Assembly: GCA_965644295.1 (NCBI GenBank)
Contig: CBFFRP010000096.1
Span: 62,001-126,000 of the forward strand
Direction of reading: 5' to 3'
DNA length: 64,000 nt
Origin: Paraphysomonas bandaiensis
Taxonomy: Eukaryota > Protista > Chrysophyceae
Shown here: positions 998 to 61,600 of the stretch, in pieces
Numbering within the stretch: position 1 is the stretch's first letter
Layout of the letters: the number at the start of each line of letters is the position of its first letter
The notes under the pieces: generated by a model
The model's database searches: none
What the model was told of the DNA's origin: nothing
Seen by the model: the letters and a program-made list of their open reading frames with translations, nothing else
Program-made: the position numbers and the translations under genes

Positions 998-1245
998 AAC
1001 TAGTGCTTAACTCTGATATCTGATATCCTACTATTTAGCGCTATGAAAGCTGCTTGTGCGTTGTGCGTCACCGCAAGCACCAAGGTGCAACCACTTTCGC
1101 TCTCTGTTAAGGTTAACTAGCCCGAATGCTTGACTTCAGTAGGAAACTCAATGCACAGGATGCCTTTGAGGTGGGCCCATTTCCGAAAGTCTGTTTATTT
1201 GGCAAGGCTCAATGACGTCTACACTAGCATTTGGCTATGAGTGAC
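998..1245 (-). mobile_element. Dispersed SINE-like/non-autonomous repeat, copy A (contains structured motif at 1045-1098)
   Basis: Reverse complement aligns by eye with 8905-9110 (ctcatagccaaatgct...tgggcccacctcaa.ggcatcc...gtggttgcac...gttaagcactag) and with 7988-8075. Confidence 0.75.
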
Positions 1246-8790: not shown

Positions 8791-9140
8791 CCTCAACAAA
8801 GTCGGACTCGCACCTTTTTGAGATGTTCTGAGGGATAAGTACCGGAGATATTTCTTCTTTGAAACTAACGTGAGCCGCATATATAGTCAGCAGATATTGC
8901 TCTGCCCACTCATAGCCAAATGCTTGTGTGGTACAAGGAATGGGCCCACCTCAAGGGCATCCGGGGTATTGGGCTGCCTGCTGATGTCAAGCATCCGGGC
9001 CGTTCACCTTAAGGATAGAGAGCAAAAGTGGTTGCACTTGGTGCTTGCGGTGACGCAGAAGCAGCTTTCGTGTGGCTAAATACTTGGATATCAAAGTTAA
9101 GCACTAGCTCTTGTACGCCTATTACTAATAATCAGACATT
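8791..9140 (+). mobile_element. Dispersed repeat copy C (longest; links B-type 5' part to the structured LINE-like 3' tail)
   Basis: Shares 5' part with 7888-8020, 3' part with copy A; tail ctag...tgtacgc...taataatcagac also present at ~32149-32187. Confidence 0.75.
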
Positions 9141-9350
9141 CCCTACCGTCTATATGCAACTTCCAGATAACAGCGGATGGAGTTCTCACCGACAGCTCAT
9201 GTCAAACATGTTTGTATGGACAGTGTGTATGAAACAATGAAAGTTCCATAAAAAGTAGGTGCACACAAAAAGGTGATCATTGGCGATATTAATATTAAAC
9301 TCTTAAACAGTTGGACATACATCACTACAACTACAAGTGGCACAGTTTGT

Positions 9351-12300
9351 TTATTGATACATTTCAATTTTATCACTAACACACTTCTCAACTTCTATCA
9401 GCTGCTGTAGCTTAAGTGCTCTCAGGTTTTCTACGCACGCCACAGTATCTGGATGATCACTACCAAGGTGTTCAGTTCGAATTTCGCGACAACGGATGTA
9501 GGCGTTTTTAGCGTCCTGCAACCGACCCAACGAATGAAGCAGAGCGGCTAAGTTGTGTAATGAAGACGCATACGCTGGATGATTCGCCCCATACACACGT
9601 TGCTTTATTTCAAGGGCACGATCATATACCGATTCTGCCTCTTCATATTCGCCTTGAGAAAATAATAATATTCCAAGATTATTCATGGTATCGGCTATAC
9701 AAGGATGAAAGTAATCGAACAACGACGTTTGAATCGACAGAGCTTCCTCATATAACTCCTTTGCACGACTATAGTTTTGCAAGCTCTGATAAACCCCACC
9801 AAGATTATGCAAAGAAGCTGCAACATTGGCGTGGTCACTTCCAAAGCATGTTCTTTTCATCTCCAGAGACTTTTGATAGTATGGAAGAGATTCCGCGAAC
9901 ATTCCTTTAGCGAAATATACAGCGCCGATATTGTTCAAAGATGACGCAACATCGGGATGAACCGCACCATACAACTTCATTTGGATATTCATAACTTTAT
10001 GAAACATTTTAAGAGCCTTATCATAGTCCCCTTGTGCCTTCAGCATGAGAGCAAAGTTACTCATACATGTCGCGACTTCAACATGTGATGTGCCGTATGT
10101 CGCCTTTTTCACTTGTAATGCATGCTCAAACAAACCGCTCGCCTTCTCGTGGTCTTGGAGAGCGAGATATATATTGGCAAGCATATGTTCACTCTGAGCA
10201 GTTAAAAAGTGGTCTGAACCACAAACCTGGCGGCGAATAACAATAGATTCTTCACAAGGAACGATGGCGTCGTGATACAAGCCTCTGTCGAATAATACAG
10301 AGCATATACCTAATTTAGATTCTGCAATAGATACGTGAAGTGGCATGCCATCTCCAGAATTACCGAATGCATCAAATCGCAACTGTAATGCTTGGTCATG
10401 ATAACTTTTCGCATCTTTAAGATTTCCTCGAAGGCGATAGTTCTCTGCTAAACCAAAAAGAGTAGTAGCAAGTAAGGGGTGTCCATTACGTAGAGCGCGC
10501 AAGCGATTCGCGTAAGCTTTTTTGTACAGGACATGACTTTCATCAAAATCTCTTCTGTTTCTCAGCAGTTCTGCTTTTCCGAACAATATATCACCTGTAA
10601 ATGGGTGAGGATATTTGTCAGACCCGTAGAGCTCAGTGTGCAAACGCAGTGCAATATCATAGATACGACTGGGCTCGTTAATCATAGAGGTCATTTCTTC
10701 TTCGTGTCGGTTTCGACGACTCCCTGTACAAGACCATAAATTAGCATGCAACCCATATGTAGAATAATAGTTCATACCATAGTCTTTCTCTCGCAATGCC
10801 ACTTCAATTTCATTGAGAATAACGTGATCAATGGGTGCAGAGGGATCCAGATCGCGACTCTTTACGTCAGGGTATTCATACCCCATATATCCCATCTTAG
10901 TCTTCTTTATAGAAGAGAGTGACGTGCCCATTACAGACGAAATTTTCGGAAGGGTGCCTGACTGATTTCTAGTGGATGCCCGTGAAGGTGTACGGCTTCC
11001 AGTAATCCCTTCAACCGAAAGATTAGGCTTACCAACGTCTTTGAAAAGTTTTCTCTTTGGTGCAACTTTTCCCATATACCTCTCGACTTCCGCTAGCCCG
11101 AAAAGAACTGGAGCCATATACATGTACTCCTTTTCATAGTGCAACTTGTATGCAGATATTAACTCTCTGTACAGACCTAAAGCGTCATTAAATTTTCCCA
11201 GCGATAATAGCATGCTAGCCAAATTTAATTTCGCATGAAGTACATCATAATGGCGCGGCCCATACAATTTCAAGAGTGTGGCATAAGCCTTTGTCAAAAT
11301 CGGATACGCTAACAGATTATCAATATTTTCAGGAACAAAGTCAAAATTATCCTCAGTCAACGTGTCGCCTTCCATAGAAGGGTATGGAACAACATCATCA
11401 CTTGAGTTTATGGTGTAAATAAACCCTTCCATTTTCCTGTTTTCAGCAAATCCGATCATCATTTTAACAACAGTTGGGTGCTCCATTCCTAGTTCTTTCG
11501 AAACAATGTGTACAGCTTTGAAATAAGTTTCTTGAGCTTGAGCATAGAAACCCATTTCCCGCATACACTCCGCCACACCATAATAAGACTCACCAATCAC
11601 CGGGTGGTACTCCCGATGGAGTTGTCTATTAAGCGTTAAACTCTTCTCGAACATACCTATCACAATATCATTAGAGCAATAACAGCATAGCAATTTCATA
11701 CCTTTTGCAACATCATATTTACCCATTTCCATGAGAACTTCGGCCAGAGCTTGATAACTCAGAGCAACCAGCGGGTGTCGGCCGCCTAAAAGTTTCTGCC
11801 GCACTTGTAAAGCTCGTTCATGCATAAGTTTAGCCTGGTGTAATTTTCCCTTGAAACGAATAGTATCAGCCAAGCGTGACATGGCAAGTGAGCCTAATAA
11901 ATTCGCTTTATTTCCACGAAGCTCTTGCGATTGCGTGAGGGCTTCATCTTGAAACTTTTCAGCTGTCAGAAGGTTACCTAATAGCCTCTCGGTCTCGGCC
12001 AAACCACTAAGGGCCGCAACAGTTTCTACGTGGTCACTTCCCAAAATTGTCCTACGAATTTCCAGGGCAGCCAAATAATGATCTTTCGCTTCGCTGTTTC
12101 GCCCCAGAGAATTCAGGCACATGCCGACGGCAAAGTAACAGTCTGACACAACAACGTGCGGACCATCTTTGGGATCAAACGTCCTCTTCATAAAGTCCAA
12201 AGACCGCTGAAAATATGGCAAGGTTTTGCTATATCGACCAGCCATATGCAATGCACGGGCGATGCACATCAGCGCCCCAATTGTGCAAGGGTGATCGGCA

Positions 12301-27365: not shown

Positions 27366-27445
27366 AATGCTGTTACTTATAATCCTTCACGGCAATGATT
27401 GCTACTAATTTGCACACAAGCACTTAACATCTCCAGCAGTACAGT

Positions 27446-27706
27446 GTATGTATGTATGTATGTGTATGTATGTATGTATGTGTATGTATGTATGTATGTA
27501 TGTATGTATGTATGTATGTATGTATGTATGTATGTATGTATGTATGTATGTATGTATGTATGTATGTATGTATGTATGTATGTATGTATGTATGTATGTA
27601 TGTATGTATGTATGTATGTATGTATGTATGTATGTATGTATGTATGTATGTATGTATGTATGTATGTATGTATGTATGTATGTATGTATGTATGTATGTA
27701 TGTATG
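27446..27706 (+). repeat. (GTAT)n tetranucleotide microsatellite, ~260 bp
   Basis: Directly visible. Confidence 0.99.
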
Positions 27707-27827
27707 GTTATTCCCTCAAAGAATTTGAAAATGAAGTGTGAAGTGTGAAGTGAGGGTGAGGTTGTGTACGTGTGGTATGGTGTCTAGTGCAGTGGATCGC
27801 TGTAACAGTCTGTGCGTATGGTGTAGT

Positions 27828-29599: not shown

Positions 29600-30104
29600 T
29601 AAGATTACTAGGAACCCACAGCCGAACCGAGACTGGAACACCGCCCACCGCACATATGAACCCCACCAATCATACACATAGGACCATAGCACCGGACCGC
29701 ATAAAACCATCAGGCCCTAGAGAGCGACAACGCCGTCTCCGGCAACTCCACATATGCCTGACGCCCAGACGGTGTACGGCGACACCGCCACATTCCACCA
29801 CACCATGAACCTCTCAGCACACACATCTAGTGCTCGGTACACTCAGGACCTTAATACAGAACCCTGTACCTCAGAGCCTGGCGGAACCTTATCCCAAGGG
29901 GAGACCCCCGGACAACTCGCGCCAGTGAGTCTTAAGACACACAAGCAGGGCGAAACTCACAAACAACATTAAGAACGGAAGTGGTTGCACCTTGGTGCTT
30001 GCGGCGACGCACAAGCAGCTTCTGTAGCGCTAAATAGTAGGATAATGGAATTTGTACGGATTAGTTATGGGTAGAGGTCTAACTAGTAGATCTAGCATAC
30101 CACT
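29600..30104 (+). mobile_element. Short 3' fragment of a non-LTR retrotransposon (copy D); 5' boundary approximate
   Basis: C/A-rich degenerate coding sequence containing PKGRPPD (29893-29913), as at the end of the ORF in 30641-32197, followed by the shared structured motif at 29976-30024. Confidence 0.65.
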
Positions 30105-30640
30105 AGCCACTATTATCGGAACGAGTTTTTAACGCCTGTTGCTAAATAAAAAGACTTTCAATATAGGAGCTCCGAATAAACATGACTTCGAGAAATACTT
30201 AATTCAGGGTTTGGGTCAGGTCGTGGTTGTTGTGTGCCTCGTACCATACATACGAGGATACGAGGTGATAGAGGTACATTTGTTGTAGCGTTGTAGCTAA
30301 AACTGAAATTTGAGGCTTTATTGTTTCTTTAAGCTATTCTAGAACCTAGAAGAATTAACATTCCATAACGTATAATGTAGTAGATAGGATTGATTAGTAT
30401 AAACAATACTTTTATATTTCATATGTTTTTGTGATGTTAATCAGGAAACAGCTATTTCCTCTTACAACAAGCAAGCTACATATAGCGCAATACAATCTAG
30501 ATACACCAGGGTTTCAACATCATGAGGCTAAGCTACAATTCAGCCTGGGAAAAAGAAATATTGTCTCACTTTTTAACTCATGTTATACTCCAATATTACA
30601 TCCTCATTACCCATGGAGAAATATAACCAAACACTTTTTG
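30105..30640 (+). repeat. Direct repeat R1 (~535 bp), near-identical to 32198-32728
   Basis: agccacta(t)tatcggaacgag...aaacactttttg occurs twice, differing by only a few substitutions and small indels. Confidence 0.97.
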
Positions 30641-32197
30641 ACTGCCAGGCGGTACAGACGCGGACCAAAGAGGCCCTCTCACACAGACGGCGCGCCCTCG
30701 GAACAAAGCCCCAGGGATATTTTACGAATGCCTCGCCACCACAGCTCTTAAACAGCGCTCAATAAAATGGACGCGCTCGCACCCCGAACGTAGAACACAA
30801 GATCAAAGCAACTGGACCTACACTGACCACGGCATTTACATAGCTGACGCCGCCGCCAGTGGCGATTGGAAGACACTAGACAAAGTGCTCGGAGCCTCCA
30901 ACTACAGTGTTGCCACAACTGACGCTACTACGCACATACTGGAAGAATTCTTCACCACGGGTCAATGGCACTGGCGTAGATACGATACACACCTCCTCAC
31001 AGACCTCGGTCCTATGCTAGGAGGCTTTACAGATCTCCACCACCAGTGGGACCTACATCACTACACCCTCCGACGAGATAGCATGTATGCTGCACAAACG
31101 CAACGAGACCCGCAGTATTGGACACGCAGCGGAACAAGGCTCCCACACAAGCTTCATCCCCTCCGTACCCATAACTCCTCCAAACACTACATCCCCCTCG
31201 CAGAGCGTATACGCGAGACGGCATACGTATGGGACAAATCCTTTGCAATGGGTAGAAACCGAGCCAAAGGAAAATCCGGATATGATCGCACAACGGCTTC
31301 CACATGCGCAGACTGTGCACACCCCACAGACAACATGGCCACATGCTTCTCACCTGCACTCACCCTGACATCATTCACATACGTGAAGATGTCCACCAAG
31401 CACACCACAATAGGCTTGACAAACTTCGCACACGCACGCTCCCCCATCCCTGGTTTTACACCGCCATAACCAAACTAGCCAAAGCCGCATGGAACCCAAC
31501 CACCCCCTAGGTTGAGCGCTACTGGACCGGCCACATTACTGCCACACAAATGGCCGACGCATTCGGACGCCACATATCCAGCTCACTGCTCGAACATCAA
31601 TTCTACGCCCTAGAAAAATCCATCGCCTCTATCCTACTCCCCCTATATGATGGAGGGCTCCGCATGCTTCGCAATAGGGGACACAGACACCACAACGTAG
31701 ACACGGCACCGGCGACACCGATCCCGACACACGCAAAGCAACGCCAGCCCCAGGATACCCACCCGACACCAAAAGTACTCCAGCTACTCCAGGCGACATC
31801 CACCCCACGAACTACACTCTCTGCAAGAGCCCAGACCCGACAGAGGCAAGCGCAACCACTCCGGAAACAACTCATCCTTACTTGTGGCCGAAACCCCACC
31901 TCAACAACCAGCACCATCTCCACCACCGACTTGCACTCTCATATACATCTCGCCTCACCCACCCCCCACATAATCCATGGCACAGGCCCGCCAGACACAT
32001 TGCCCAAAGGTAGACCCCCCGACTAACCTCACTACAAGGGACGGTTGCACCATGGTGCTCGCAGCGATGCACAAGCAGTCCCGAGACGGTTTCCCGCCAC
32101 TAGTAGTATATAGCAAATCTAGTTATTAGCTAGTCTATAGACATAAACTAGTTTCTGTACGCAACCGTACTCATGTAATAATCAGACTTTCATATAG
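30641..32197 (+). mobile_element. 5'-truncated, degenerate non-LTR (LINE-like) retrotransposon (copy E)
   Basis: C-rich broken ORF with C-terminal CCHC finger across a frameshift (CADC...DNM/HMLLTCTHP), YWTG motif, terminal LPKGRPPD* at 32026; structured motif at 32038-32082; flanked by R1/R2. Confidence 0.7.
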
Positions 32198-32728
32198 AGC
32201 CACTATATCGGAACGAGTTTTTAACGCCTATTGCTAAATAAAAAGACTTTCAATATAGGAGCTCCGAATAAACATGACTTCGAGAAATACTTAATTCAGG
32301 GTTTGGGTCAGGTCGTGGTTGTTGTGTGCCTCGTACCATACATACGAGGATACGAGGTGATAGAGGTACATTTGTTGTAGCGTTGTAGCTAAAACTGAAA
32401 TTTGAGGCTTTATTGTTTCTTTAAGCTATTCTAGAACCTAGAAGAATTAACATTCCATAACGTATAATGTAGTAGATAGGATTGATTAGTATAAACAATA
32501 CTTTTATATTTCATATGTTTTTGTGATGTTAATCAGGAAACAGCTATTTCCTCTTACAACAAGCAAGCTACATATAGCAATACAATCTAGATACCAGGGT
32601 TTCAACATCATGAGGCTAAGCTACAATTCAGCCTAGGAAAATGAAATATTGTCTCACTTTTTAACTCATGTTATACTCCAATATTACATCCTCATTACCC
32701 ATGGAGAAATATAACCAAACACTTTTTG
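32198..32728 (+). repeat. Direct repeat R2
   Basis: Second copy of 30105-30640. Confidence 0.97.
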
Positions 32729-60737: not shown

Positions 60738-60851
60738 TCTTCTCACTACTGTATGACAGTATGGTGAGATTATATCAAATCACTGAACAACACCCGAACT
60801 CAGATATACACTGCAAGAAACATCCCACAAACTAAACACACACGCATACCG

Positions 60852-61265
60852 CATACATACATACATACATACATACATACATACATACATACATACATAC
60901 ATACATACATACATACATACATACATACATACATACATACATACATACATACATACATACATACATACATACATACATACATACATACATACATACATAC
61001 ATACATACATACATACATACATACATACATACATACATACATACATACATACATACATACATACATACATACATACATACATACATGCATACATACATAC
61101 ATACATACATACATACATACATACATACATACATACATACATACATACATACATACATACATACATACATACATACATACATACATACATACATACATAC
61201 ATACATACATACATACATACATACATACATACATACATACATACATACATACATACATACATACA
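60852..61265 (+). repeat. (CATA)n microsatellite, ~410 bp, one interruption at ~61087
   Basis: Directly visible. Confidence 0.99.
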
Positions 61266-61600
61266 GCAGAATACCGTAGTTGTGATTCAGTTGTGATTTC
61301 AGATGTAGTGTATCTGGGTTTTCGCTGCTGGTTTAAAAATACTGGAGTTTTGAATAAAATCAACCTATTCTACATATACAATCATAAAAAATTCAATTTC
61401 TATATAAAAACCTTCTAATTATTTAAAAAAGTTTTGTACGGTTAAGTTCATATATAACAAGCTTCAAAAATATTTCTATAGAGAACATACCTCTGTGTGT
61501 GTTCTCTATGAATATCCCTGTATAGACCATAGCACACTATACAGTCATGATAGTCGAATAAATCAGATTGATTCATTCTTTCTATAGTATCAGACGATTG

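Follow-up and report, generated by a model that had tools for sequence, protein, structure and literature searches.

A conserved branched RNA motif in the 3′ tails of LINEs and their non-coding partners in Paraphysomonas bandaiensis is a candidate recognition module

Retroelements and RNA viruses carry several kinds of structured RNA. In R2 and SART1 the reverse transcriptase recognises a folded 3′ UTR, which is sufficient to prime reverse transcription. Retrotransposons also contain self-cleaving ribozymes, HDV-like in R2, RTE and L1Tc and hammerheads in retrozymes, and viral xrRNAs stall Xrn1 via a ring-like pseudoknotted fold. The closest described systems to the one reported here are stringent-type LINEs, in which the ORF2 protein binds a stem-loop in the cognate 3′ tail, a structure also present in the partner SINEs (PMC4176376).

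Here we describe a motif from the chrysophyte Paraphysomonas bandaiensis that, as in eel UnaL2/UnaSINE1 and zebrafish ZfL2-1/ZfL2-2 (PMC4176376), is a conserved structured 3′ UTR RNA shared with non-autonomous elements. Its elements likewise have defined 3′ ends that are independent of poly(A), and the presumed role, recognition by the LINE protein, is the same, here by analogy. However, where UnaL2 and ZfL2 have a single hairpin next to terminal short repeats, this motif is a ~50-nt branched module in which an outer stem encloses two hairpins, one with a C(NN)G and one with a GNRA loop, and it sits ~145 nt from the terminus; the host differs, and so, probably, does the LINE clade, which here combines APE and RT with an N-terminal SET domain. 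R2 and SART1 resemble the present elements in having no poly(A), but they are site-specific, whereas the elements here insert at dispersed sites with variable TSDs, and no Rfam R2 element matches.

The window that we analysed is a 64,000-nucleotide stretch of one P. bandaiensis contig (CBFFRP010000096.1, positions 62,001 to 126,000). An earlier note on it had reported four copies of the motif, and sequence inspection, pattern searches and a covariance model find all four. A 29-nt degenerate pattern gave three window matches against 0.00 expected, the fourth site (9030) lacking one C, and the covariance model (R1, built from 15 motif copies) scored the four sites at 62-91 bits, with the next window match at 16.8 bits.

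Two of the copies lie in LINE 3′ UTRs on the plus strand. The first, at 29975..30025 (core 29983-30018; 90.9 bits), belongs to an F1-type LINE. Its outer stem, P1, is formed by 29975-29982 and 30018-30025 (ACGGAAGT/GCTTCTGT), and its core holds the hairpins GCAC-CTTG-GTGC and GCG-GCGA-CGC, the latter capped by a GNRA loop. The TGA stop of the LINE ORF is at 29926..29928, 55-57 nt upstream of the core; this ORF is degenerate in the window, and intact copies occur at loci L031, L032 and L033. The rest of the tail (30026..30165) includes GTAGCGYTAAATAGTAGGATA, which is conserved, and a long-hairpin domain, which varies; it closes with a terminal box that ends in ...AAAAGACTTTCAATATA and lacks poly(A). 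The second, in an F4-type LINE, is at 32038..32082 (core 32043-32078), with P1 strands at 32038-32042 and 32078-32082 (GGGAC/GTCCC), the P3 loop CATG and a P4 hairpin GCA-GCGA-TGC. It follows a TAA stop at 32024-32026, 17-19 nt upstream of the core, and its tail (32083..32196) ends in the terminal box TGTAATAATCAGACTTTCATATA.

The other two copies are in SINE-like elements. The plus-strand copy at 9022..9071, in a non-coding element, has a core at 9030-9064 with one C deleted, a P1 of GCAAAAGT/GCTTTCGT with one mismatch, the loop GTGA and a tail end at 9145. The minus-strand copy at 1043..1100 has a core at 1092-1050, a P1 of GCGAAAGT/GCTTTCAT and a tail end near 922; the 7-nt internal duplication described for it is there, as ACGCACA within P4 and the junction.

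Further features of the window deserve mention. The 16.8-bit match (9291-9356, minus strand; E 0.019) is a weak, AT-rich hit beside the SINE-like copy and may be a heavily decayed motif copy or a chance match. A direct duplication of ~530 bp, 99-100% identical between 30114-30640 and 32206-32728, flanks the F4-type LINE fragment; the duplicated DNA starts within the tail of the older F1-type element, and recombination could have produced it, or it could be an exceptionally long target duplication. Two long arrays of an 8-nt tandem repeat, at 27393-27762 and 60748-61300, are mutually 96% reverse-complementary and lie 33 kb apart.

The motif is abundant in the window's own genome (62.5 Mb, 669 contigs), where a strict pattern found 729 matches and a looser one 919, each against 0 for the reversed control; a chance origin of the sites is excluded. 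The best 150 matches of the R1 genome search were all near-identical, with no divergent copies among the matches listed. No Rfam family reached the gathering score in the 64-kb window or E ≤ 10 at 29800-30200, in keeping with the suggestion that the structure was undescribed. The kind of element, a structured LINE 3′ tail common to SINEs, is already known, and the specific motif, absent from Rfam, is new. Our literature search found no account of chrysophyte LINE or SINE tails.

Outside this genome, we found the motif only in ENA/TARA contigs encoding LINEs 63-99% identical to those of this genome. A pattern scan of JGI metagenomes gave six matches, a chance-level number for a 20-base pattern, and none of the six had the structure. 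The LINE proteins P0002, P0010 and P0016 come from ENA/TARA assemblies. P0002, from a TARA scaffold, shares 99% identity with one of the LINEs here, and the contig of P0016 bears an L75-type tail, so neither is independent of this genome. The motif was not found in the contigs of P0004 and P0013.

Searching the genome with P0002 revealed LINE lineages at ~99, 69-77, 63-67 and 42-43% amino acid identity. The motif core is present in the 3′ UTRs of at least five LINE lineages, whose reverse transcriptases are 42-99% identical, and it directly follows the stop codon in every lineage whose 3′ end was examined. Its reported position just downstream of the LINE ORF generalises: the motif sits early in the 3′ UTR, 17-56 nt past the stop codon. 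F1-clade ORFs close with TGA 55-57 nt ahead of the core; those of the F4, LA and L75 clades have a conserved C-terminus, PKGRPPD, and a TAA stop 17-19 nt ahead of the core. A further lineage (L024, region of G000:C17:187166) has an ORF ending in LKERPPD* ~60 nt upstream of a motif with a decayed P1, which indicates that motif-bearing lineages outnumber the five characterised.

As expected of autonomous LINEs, the ORFs upstream of the motif have RVT_1 and Exo_endo_phos domains. Full-length copies carry a 1468-aa ORF with RVT_1, and at L033 the preceding ORF has SET and Exo_endo_phos domains. Intact ORFs and near-identical young copies show a LINE family that is, to judge from these sequences, active. 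SET is an unusual accessory domain for a LINE; in the L033 ORF (L033:4527-6836, minus strand, from G000:C25) the lysine methyltransferase-type SET domain lies ahead of the APE endonuclease (Pfam SET 9e-9, Exo_endo_phos 3e-10), and the same two domains occur together in P0005, an independent database protein.

Across these lineages the 36-nt core is nearly invariant, with just six positions that differ between lineages, and its UTR flanks are unalignable between clades, which bears out the view that the copies sit in partly unrelated contexts. In a cross-lineage alignment, the core and the terminal box are conserved islands in unalignable UTRs. LINEs swap 3′ modules, and exchange between lineages could be another cause of the invariance of the core. 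Taken further, the motif might have no function of its own, owing its distribution to recent tail exchange or serving in termination or readthrough of the upstream ORF, as its place 9-45 nt past the stop codon would allow. We regard this as extremely unlikely: the two clades differ in P1 and have unalignable flanks on both sides of a near-identical core, which argues against simple recent exchange, and SINE-like and tail-only elements retain the motif without any ORF.

The motif had been taken to mark the 3′ end of these elements, but the real terminus is ~145 nt further downstream, in the conserved terminal box. Copies of the same family share ~110-150 nt past the motif and then diverge at a fixed point after the common box. 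In F1 elements and SINE-like families the box reads AATAATCAGAC(A/T)TTCA.TA; F4, LA and L75 have GTAATAATCAGAYCTTTATATA or a slight variation on it. In all families the box fits the consensus AATAATCAGAY.TTC..TA, with the flank or TSD immediately after it and no poly(A). The elements thus share with stringent-type LINEs a defined 3′ terminus that does not depend on poly(A). Copies are 5′-truncated, a hallmark of target-primed reverse transcription, and TSDs of 9-19 bp flank the short ones.

A distant LINE suggests an order for the two conserved islands. At L088:2840-3080 (protein P0011, from an ENA metagenome contig), a LINE 32% identical to P0002 at the amino acid level has an ORF ending in PEGPPPD* (compare PKGRPPD*) and a similar terminal box, GTAATAATTAGAT. 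The motif sequence is absent after its stop, where an outer stem and two hairpins are predicted without statistical support. With a box and no motif in this LINE, the terminal box may be the older of the two.

Borrowing of the tail by non-coding partners, also proposed earlier, is borne out by SINE-like families, which have unrelated 5′ parts, and by tail-only insertions; both share the motif and the terminal box with the LINEs, as partner elements do in stringent-type systems. In the SINE-like elements the motif is retained together with ~25 nt that follow it and the final ~35 nt, and the long middle hairpin domain between them is replaced. As a natural series of deletions, these elements suggest a signal in two parts. 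Their 5′ parts (GGGCCCACCT..GGGTATTGGGCTGCC..GTCAAGCATCCGGG..) are found at L023:1300-1500, at L007:1250-1500 and at 8930-9020 of the window. ARAGORN found no tRNA in eight loci with these heads, and Rfam at E ≤ 1 found no tRNA, 5S, 7SL or other family; with zero matches, we rejected a tRNA, 5S or 7SL origin. Because no pol III-derived head was recognised, as a SINE in the strict sense would have, we call these elements SINE-like.

In the minimum free energy (MFE) fold, P1 encloses a short P2 and the hairpins P3 (GCAC-C(NN)G-GUGC) and P4 (GCR-GNRA-YGC). By itself the motif folds no more stably than shuffled sequences do (z -1.05 to +0.3, not significant), so thermodynamics alone lends no support to the fold; for the whole 191-nt F1a tail the folding z is -2.2.

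Support for structure comes from substitutions. P1 occurs as CGGAAGU paired with GCUUCUG or GCUUUCG, as CGAAAGU/GCUUUCG, as CGGAGGU/GCCUCCG (a subfamily of at least 13 copies) and as GGGAC or GGGAU (GGGAY) with GUCCC. The covariation claimed for the outer stem is real, with several independent compensatory changes and six P1 pairs with double changes, and that claimed for the GNRA hairpin consists of one G-C to A-U swap, a single P4 pair changed on both sides. Loops of P4 in active lineages are GCGA, GUGA and GCAA only, all GNRA; in the P3 loop the outer C and G are kept and the two middle bases vary (UU, AU, AA). The proposed covariation also withstood a larger alignment (A4, 70 distinct copies), in which 92.6% of cells are paired versus 26-46% with the partner strand slid, although these cells are not independent and the underlying events are few, one deep split and ~3 subfamily events, all in one genome. 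P1 and P4 thus display the compensatory structure expected of a stringent-type element, and the inner helices, being invariant, are uninformative. Among copies with a purine at position 2 of the 3′ strand of P1 there were 22 decayed single copies only, none of them a new P1 type.

The inner architecture proposed in the earlier note fared less evenly. Its sequence elements, the GGT bulge, the TGC/GCA stem and the AC/GT pairs, are all present, but their pairing is not favoured over two alternatives and the inner pairs are invariant: because P2 and P3 never vary in active lineages, the note's model, the MFE fold and the long-hairpin model from RNAalifold score alike.

The tail module extends from ~11 nt upstream of the core to the terminal box, and its 5′ boundary is sharp. 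In an unbiased sample, 20 of 95 copies have their 5′ end at most 12 nt upstream of the core; their TSDs prove such short copies to be complete insertions. We surveyed the 5′ ends at the first 100 exact F1a/F1c terminal-box sites, which represent young subfamilies, cross-checking them with upstream and motif-proximal markers. Sixty-seven of these elements reach at least 49 nt upstream of the core, and 14 start at -9 to -14, 12 of them at -10 or -11, that is, 2-3 nt before P1. At these 100 sites no start falls between -49 and -15, and the 180 nt downstream hold seven starts only, one at +27 and six at +82 to +119 (two exactly at +89). Two of the remaining sites have SINE-like heads, one (L164) is LINE-linked with a diverged upstream marker, and nine are unassigned. 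Genome-wide, the terminal marker occurs at 303 sites, compared to 100 and 96 for two upstream markers. We also noticed a second, weaker cluster of 5′ ends among TSD-flanked F1a/F1c copies, at +82 (L167), +89 (L163 and L166), +90 (L162) and +97 (L170), which falls within the long middle hairpin domain of the tail.

Tail-only copies arose from F1a, F1b, F1d, F4 and LA/L75 elements (the LA/L75-type 5′ ends rest on few copies). They belong to different subfamilies and share no private substitutions, so a single master copy is not their source. Starts in the clade whose P1 has 5 bp lie at -6 to -10, with two more at -1. The 5′ boundary is also the point of junction between SINE-like heads and the tail; conservation with the F1 LINE begins there at AGA(A/G)CG, position -11. 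This shared boundary implies that some process yields template RNAs or cDNAs ending 2-3 nt before P1.

One candidate process is a block to 5′-to-3′ RNA decay. The motif, bare or protein-bound, would act like an xrRNA and leave a stable ~190-nt tail RNA starting 2-3 nt before P1, which would be copied into tail-only insertions and would have seeded the SINE-like families by template switching at its 5′ end. Such a block would account for the cluster at -10/-11 and the empty interval upstream of it, for TSD-flanked tail-only copies in several subfamilies without common private mutations, for the shift of starts in the clade with a shorter P1 and for the junction with the SINE-like heads. In the xrRNAs of flaviviruses and plant viruses, too, a compact junction-type fold is combined with an RNA that apparently starts a few nucleotides upstream of the first helix, and the size and three-way-junction topology of the motif resemble theirs, although the 5′ end here is read from DNA copies only. 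Against it, no Rfam family is similar even at E ≤ 10, a search that would include the curated xrRNA models; no pseudoknot or ring-forming pairing was identified; and F4-type starts are more scattered (-10, -7, -1, -1). We consider a decay block possible but unlikely; it is compatible with recognition of the motif by a LINE protein. In our literature search we found no account of exonuclease-resistant, processing or protection elements in retrotransposons or their tails.

The sharp boundary would also be expected if the RNA were cut just upstream of P1, by a small self-cleaving ribozyme or by a host endonuclease for which the motif is a substrate. Retrotransposons do carry 5′-processing ribozymes, as in the HDV-like examples of R2 and RTE, and in these too a structured RNA within a retroelement adjoins a discrete 5′ end. 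Here, however, the site is in the 3′ UTR, and in at least 67 of the 100 F1a/F1c insertions the sequence continues uncut across the motif; cleavage would sever the ORF from the 3′ end it needs. The topology and conserved core belong to no known ribozyme class and match no Rfam ribozyme family, the stems are sequence-invariant, unlike typical ribozyme stems, and no known catalytic core corresponds to a 50-nt motif in which few conserved bases are unpaired. Cleavage is accordingly very unlikely in our estimate.

An internal promoter at the DNA level, for example a pol III-like one initiating tail RNAs ~10 nt upstream, could explain why tail-only copies start at a purine (A-11 or G-10), and by eye the core loosely resembles tRNA A and B boxes (AGTGG, GGTT..A.CC). 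Yet the spacing and register do not fit a type-2 promoter, which should initiate at least 20 nt upstream of the A-box-like piece; F1b-type tails have, ahead of their terminal box, a TTTTT run that would terminate pol III; the compensatory changes in P1 point to a constraint at the RNA level; and the weaker start cluster at +82 to +97 would be left unexplained. We judge such a promoter highly improbable. Since most insertions pass through the motif uncut, no ribozyme class matches, the promoter boxes are out of register and a T5 run occurs in some tails, we rank exonuclease or RNP protection above cleavage, and cleavage above an internal promoter, as the origin of the 5′ boundary.

For the motif as a whole, we find it fairly probable, by analogy with stringent-type LINEs, that it is a cis recognition module bound by the protein of such a LINE. 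The motif would then be the folded, sequence-conserved first domain of a 3′ UTR tail module in a non-LTR retrotransposon superfamily with an APE endonuclease and RT. The LINE protein would bind it, alone or together with the terminal box, and binding would lead to the start of reverse transcription on the element's own RNA at its 3′ terminus; SINE-like and tail-only elements, which carry the tail module, would be mobilised in trans. This recognition model draws on the location of the motif, its near-invariance across lineages with RTs 42% identical, the structure-preserving substitutions and the fact that all mobilised non-coding derivatives retain it. To the observed features of the module (location, copy number, sharing between LINEs and non-coding elements, P1 and P4 covariation, TSD-flanked insertions and a discrete 5′ boundary) it adds protein binding and a requirement for retrotransposition, which we infer. 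Several observations weigh against it: L2-clade LINEs have terminal stem-loops, but the motif stops ~145 nt short of the terminus; its folding energy alone is at the level of shuffled sequence, and the covariation events are few and from one genome; the inner stems, being invariant, suggest a constraint on sequence and not purely on structure; and the distant LINE at L088 keeps the terminal box without the motif sequence.

Read as a recognition module, the motif is a defined, very compact candidate from a protist lineage that has received little study and in which its LINE family is active, with natural 'mutants' available in the four P1 types, the three GNRA loops and the internal deletions of the SINE-like elements, and a single covariance model flags about 900 retroelement ends in this genome. 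The -10/-11 start common to tail-only insertions and SINE-like heads offers a testable model of SINE birth from LINE tails, and it bears on the question of whether retroelement tails carry RNA-protecting or RNA-processing structures. It is also possible, but unlikely, that the motif itself fixes an RNA 5′ end exactly 2-3 nt ahead of the outer stem, by exonuclease stalling or by cleavage, to give a ~190-nt subgenomic tail RNA. If that is true, this tail RNA would be the unit mobilised by the LINE enzyme, and the SINE-like families would have been born on its 5′ end via template switching.
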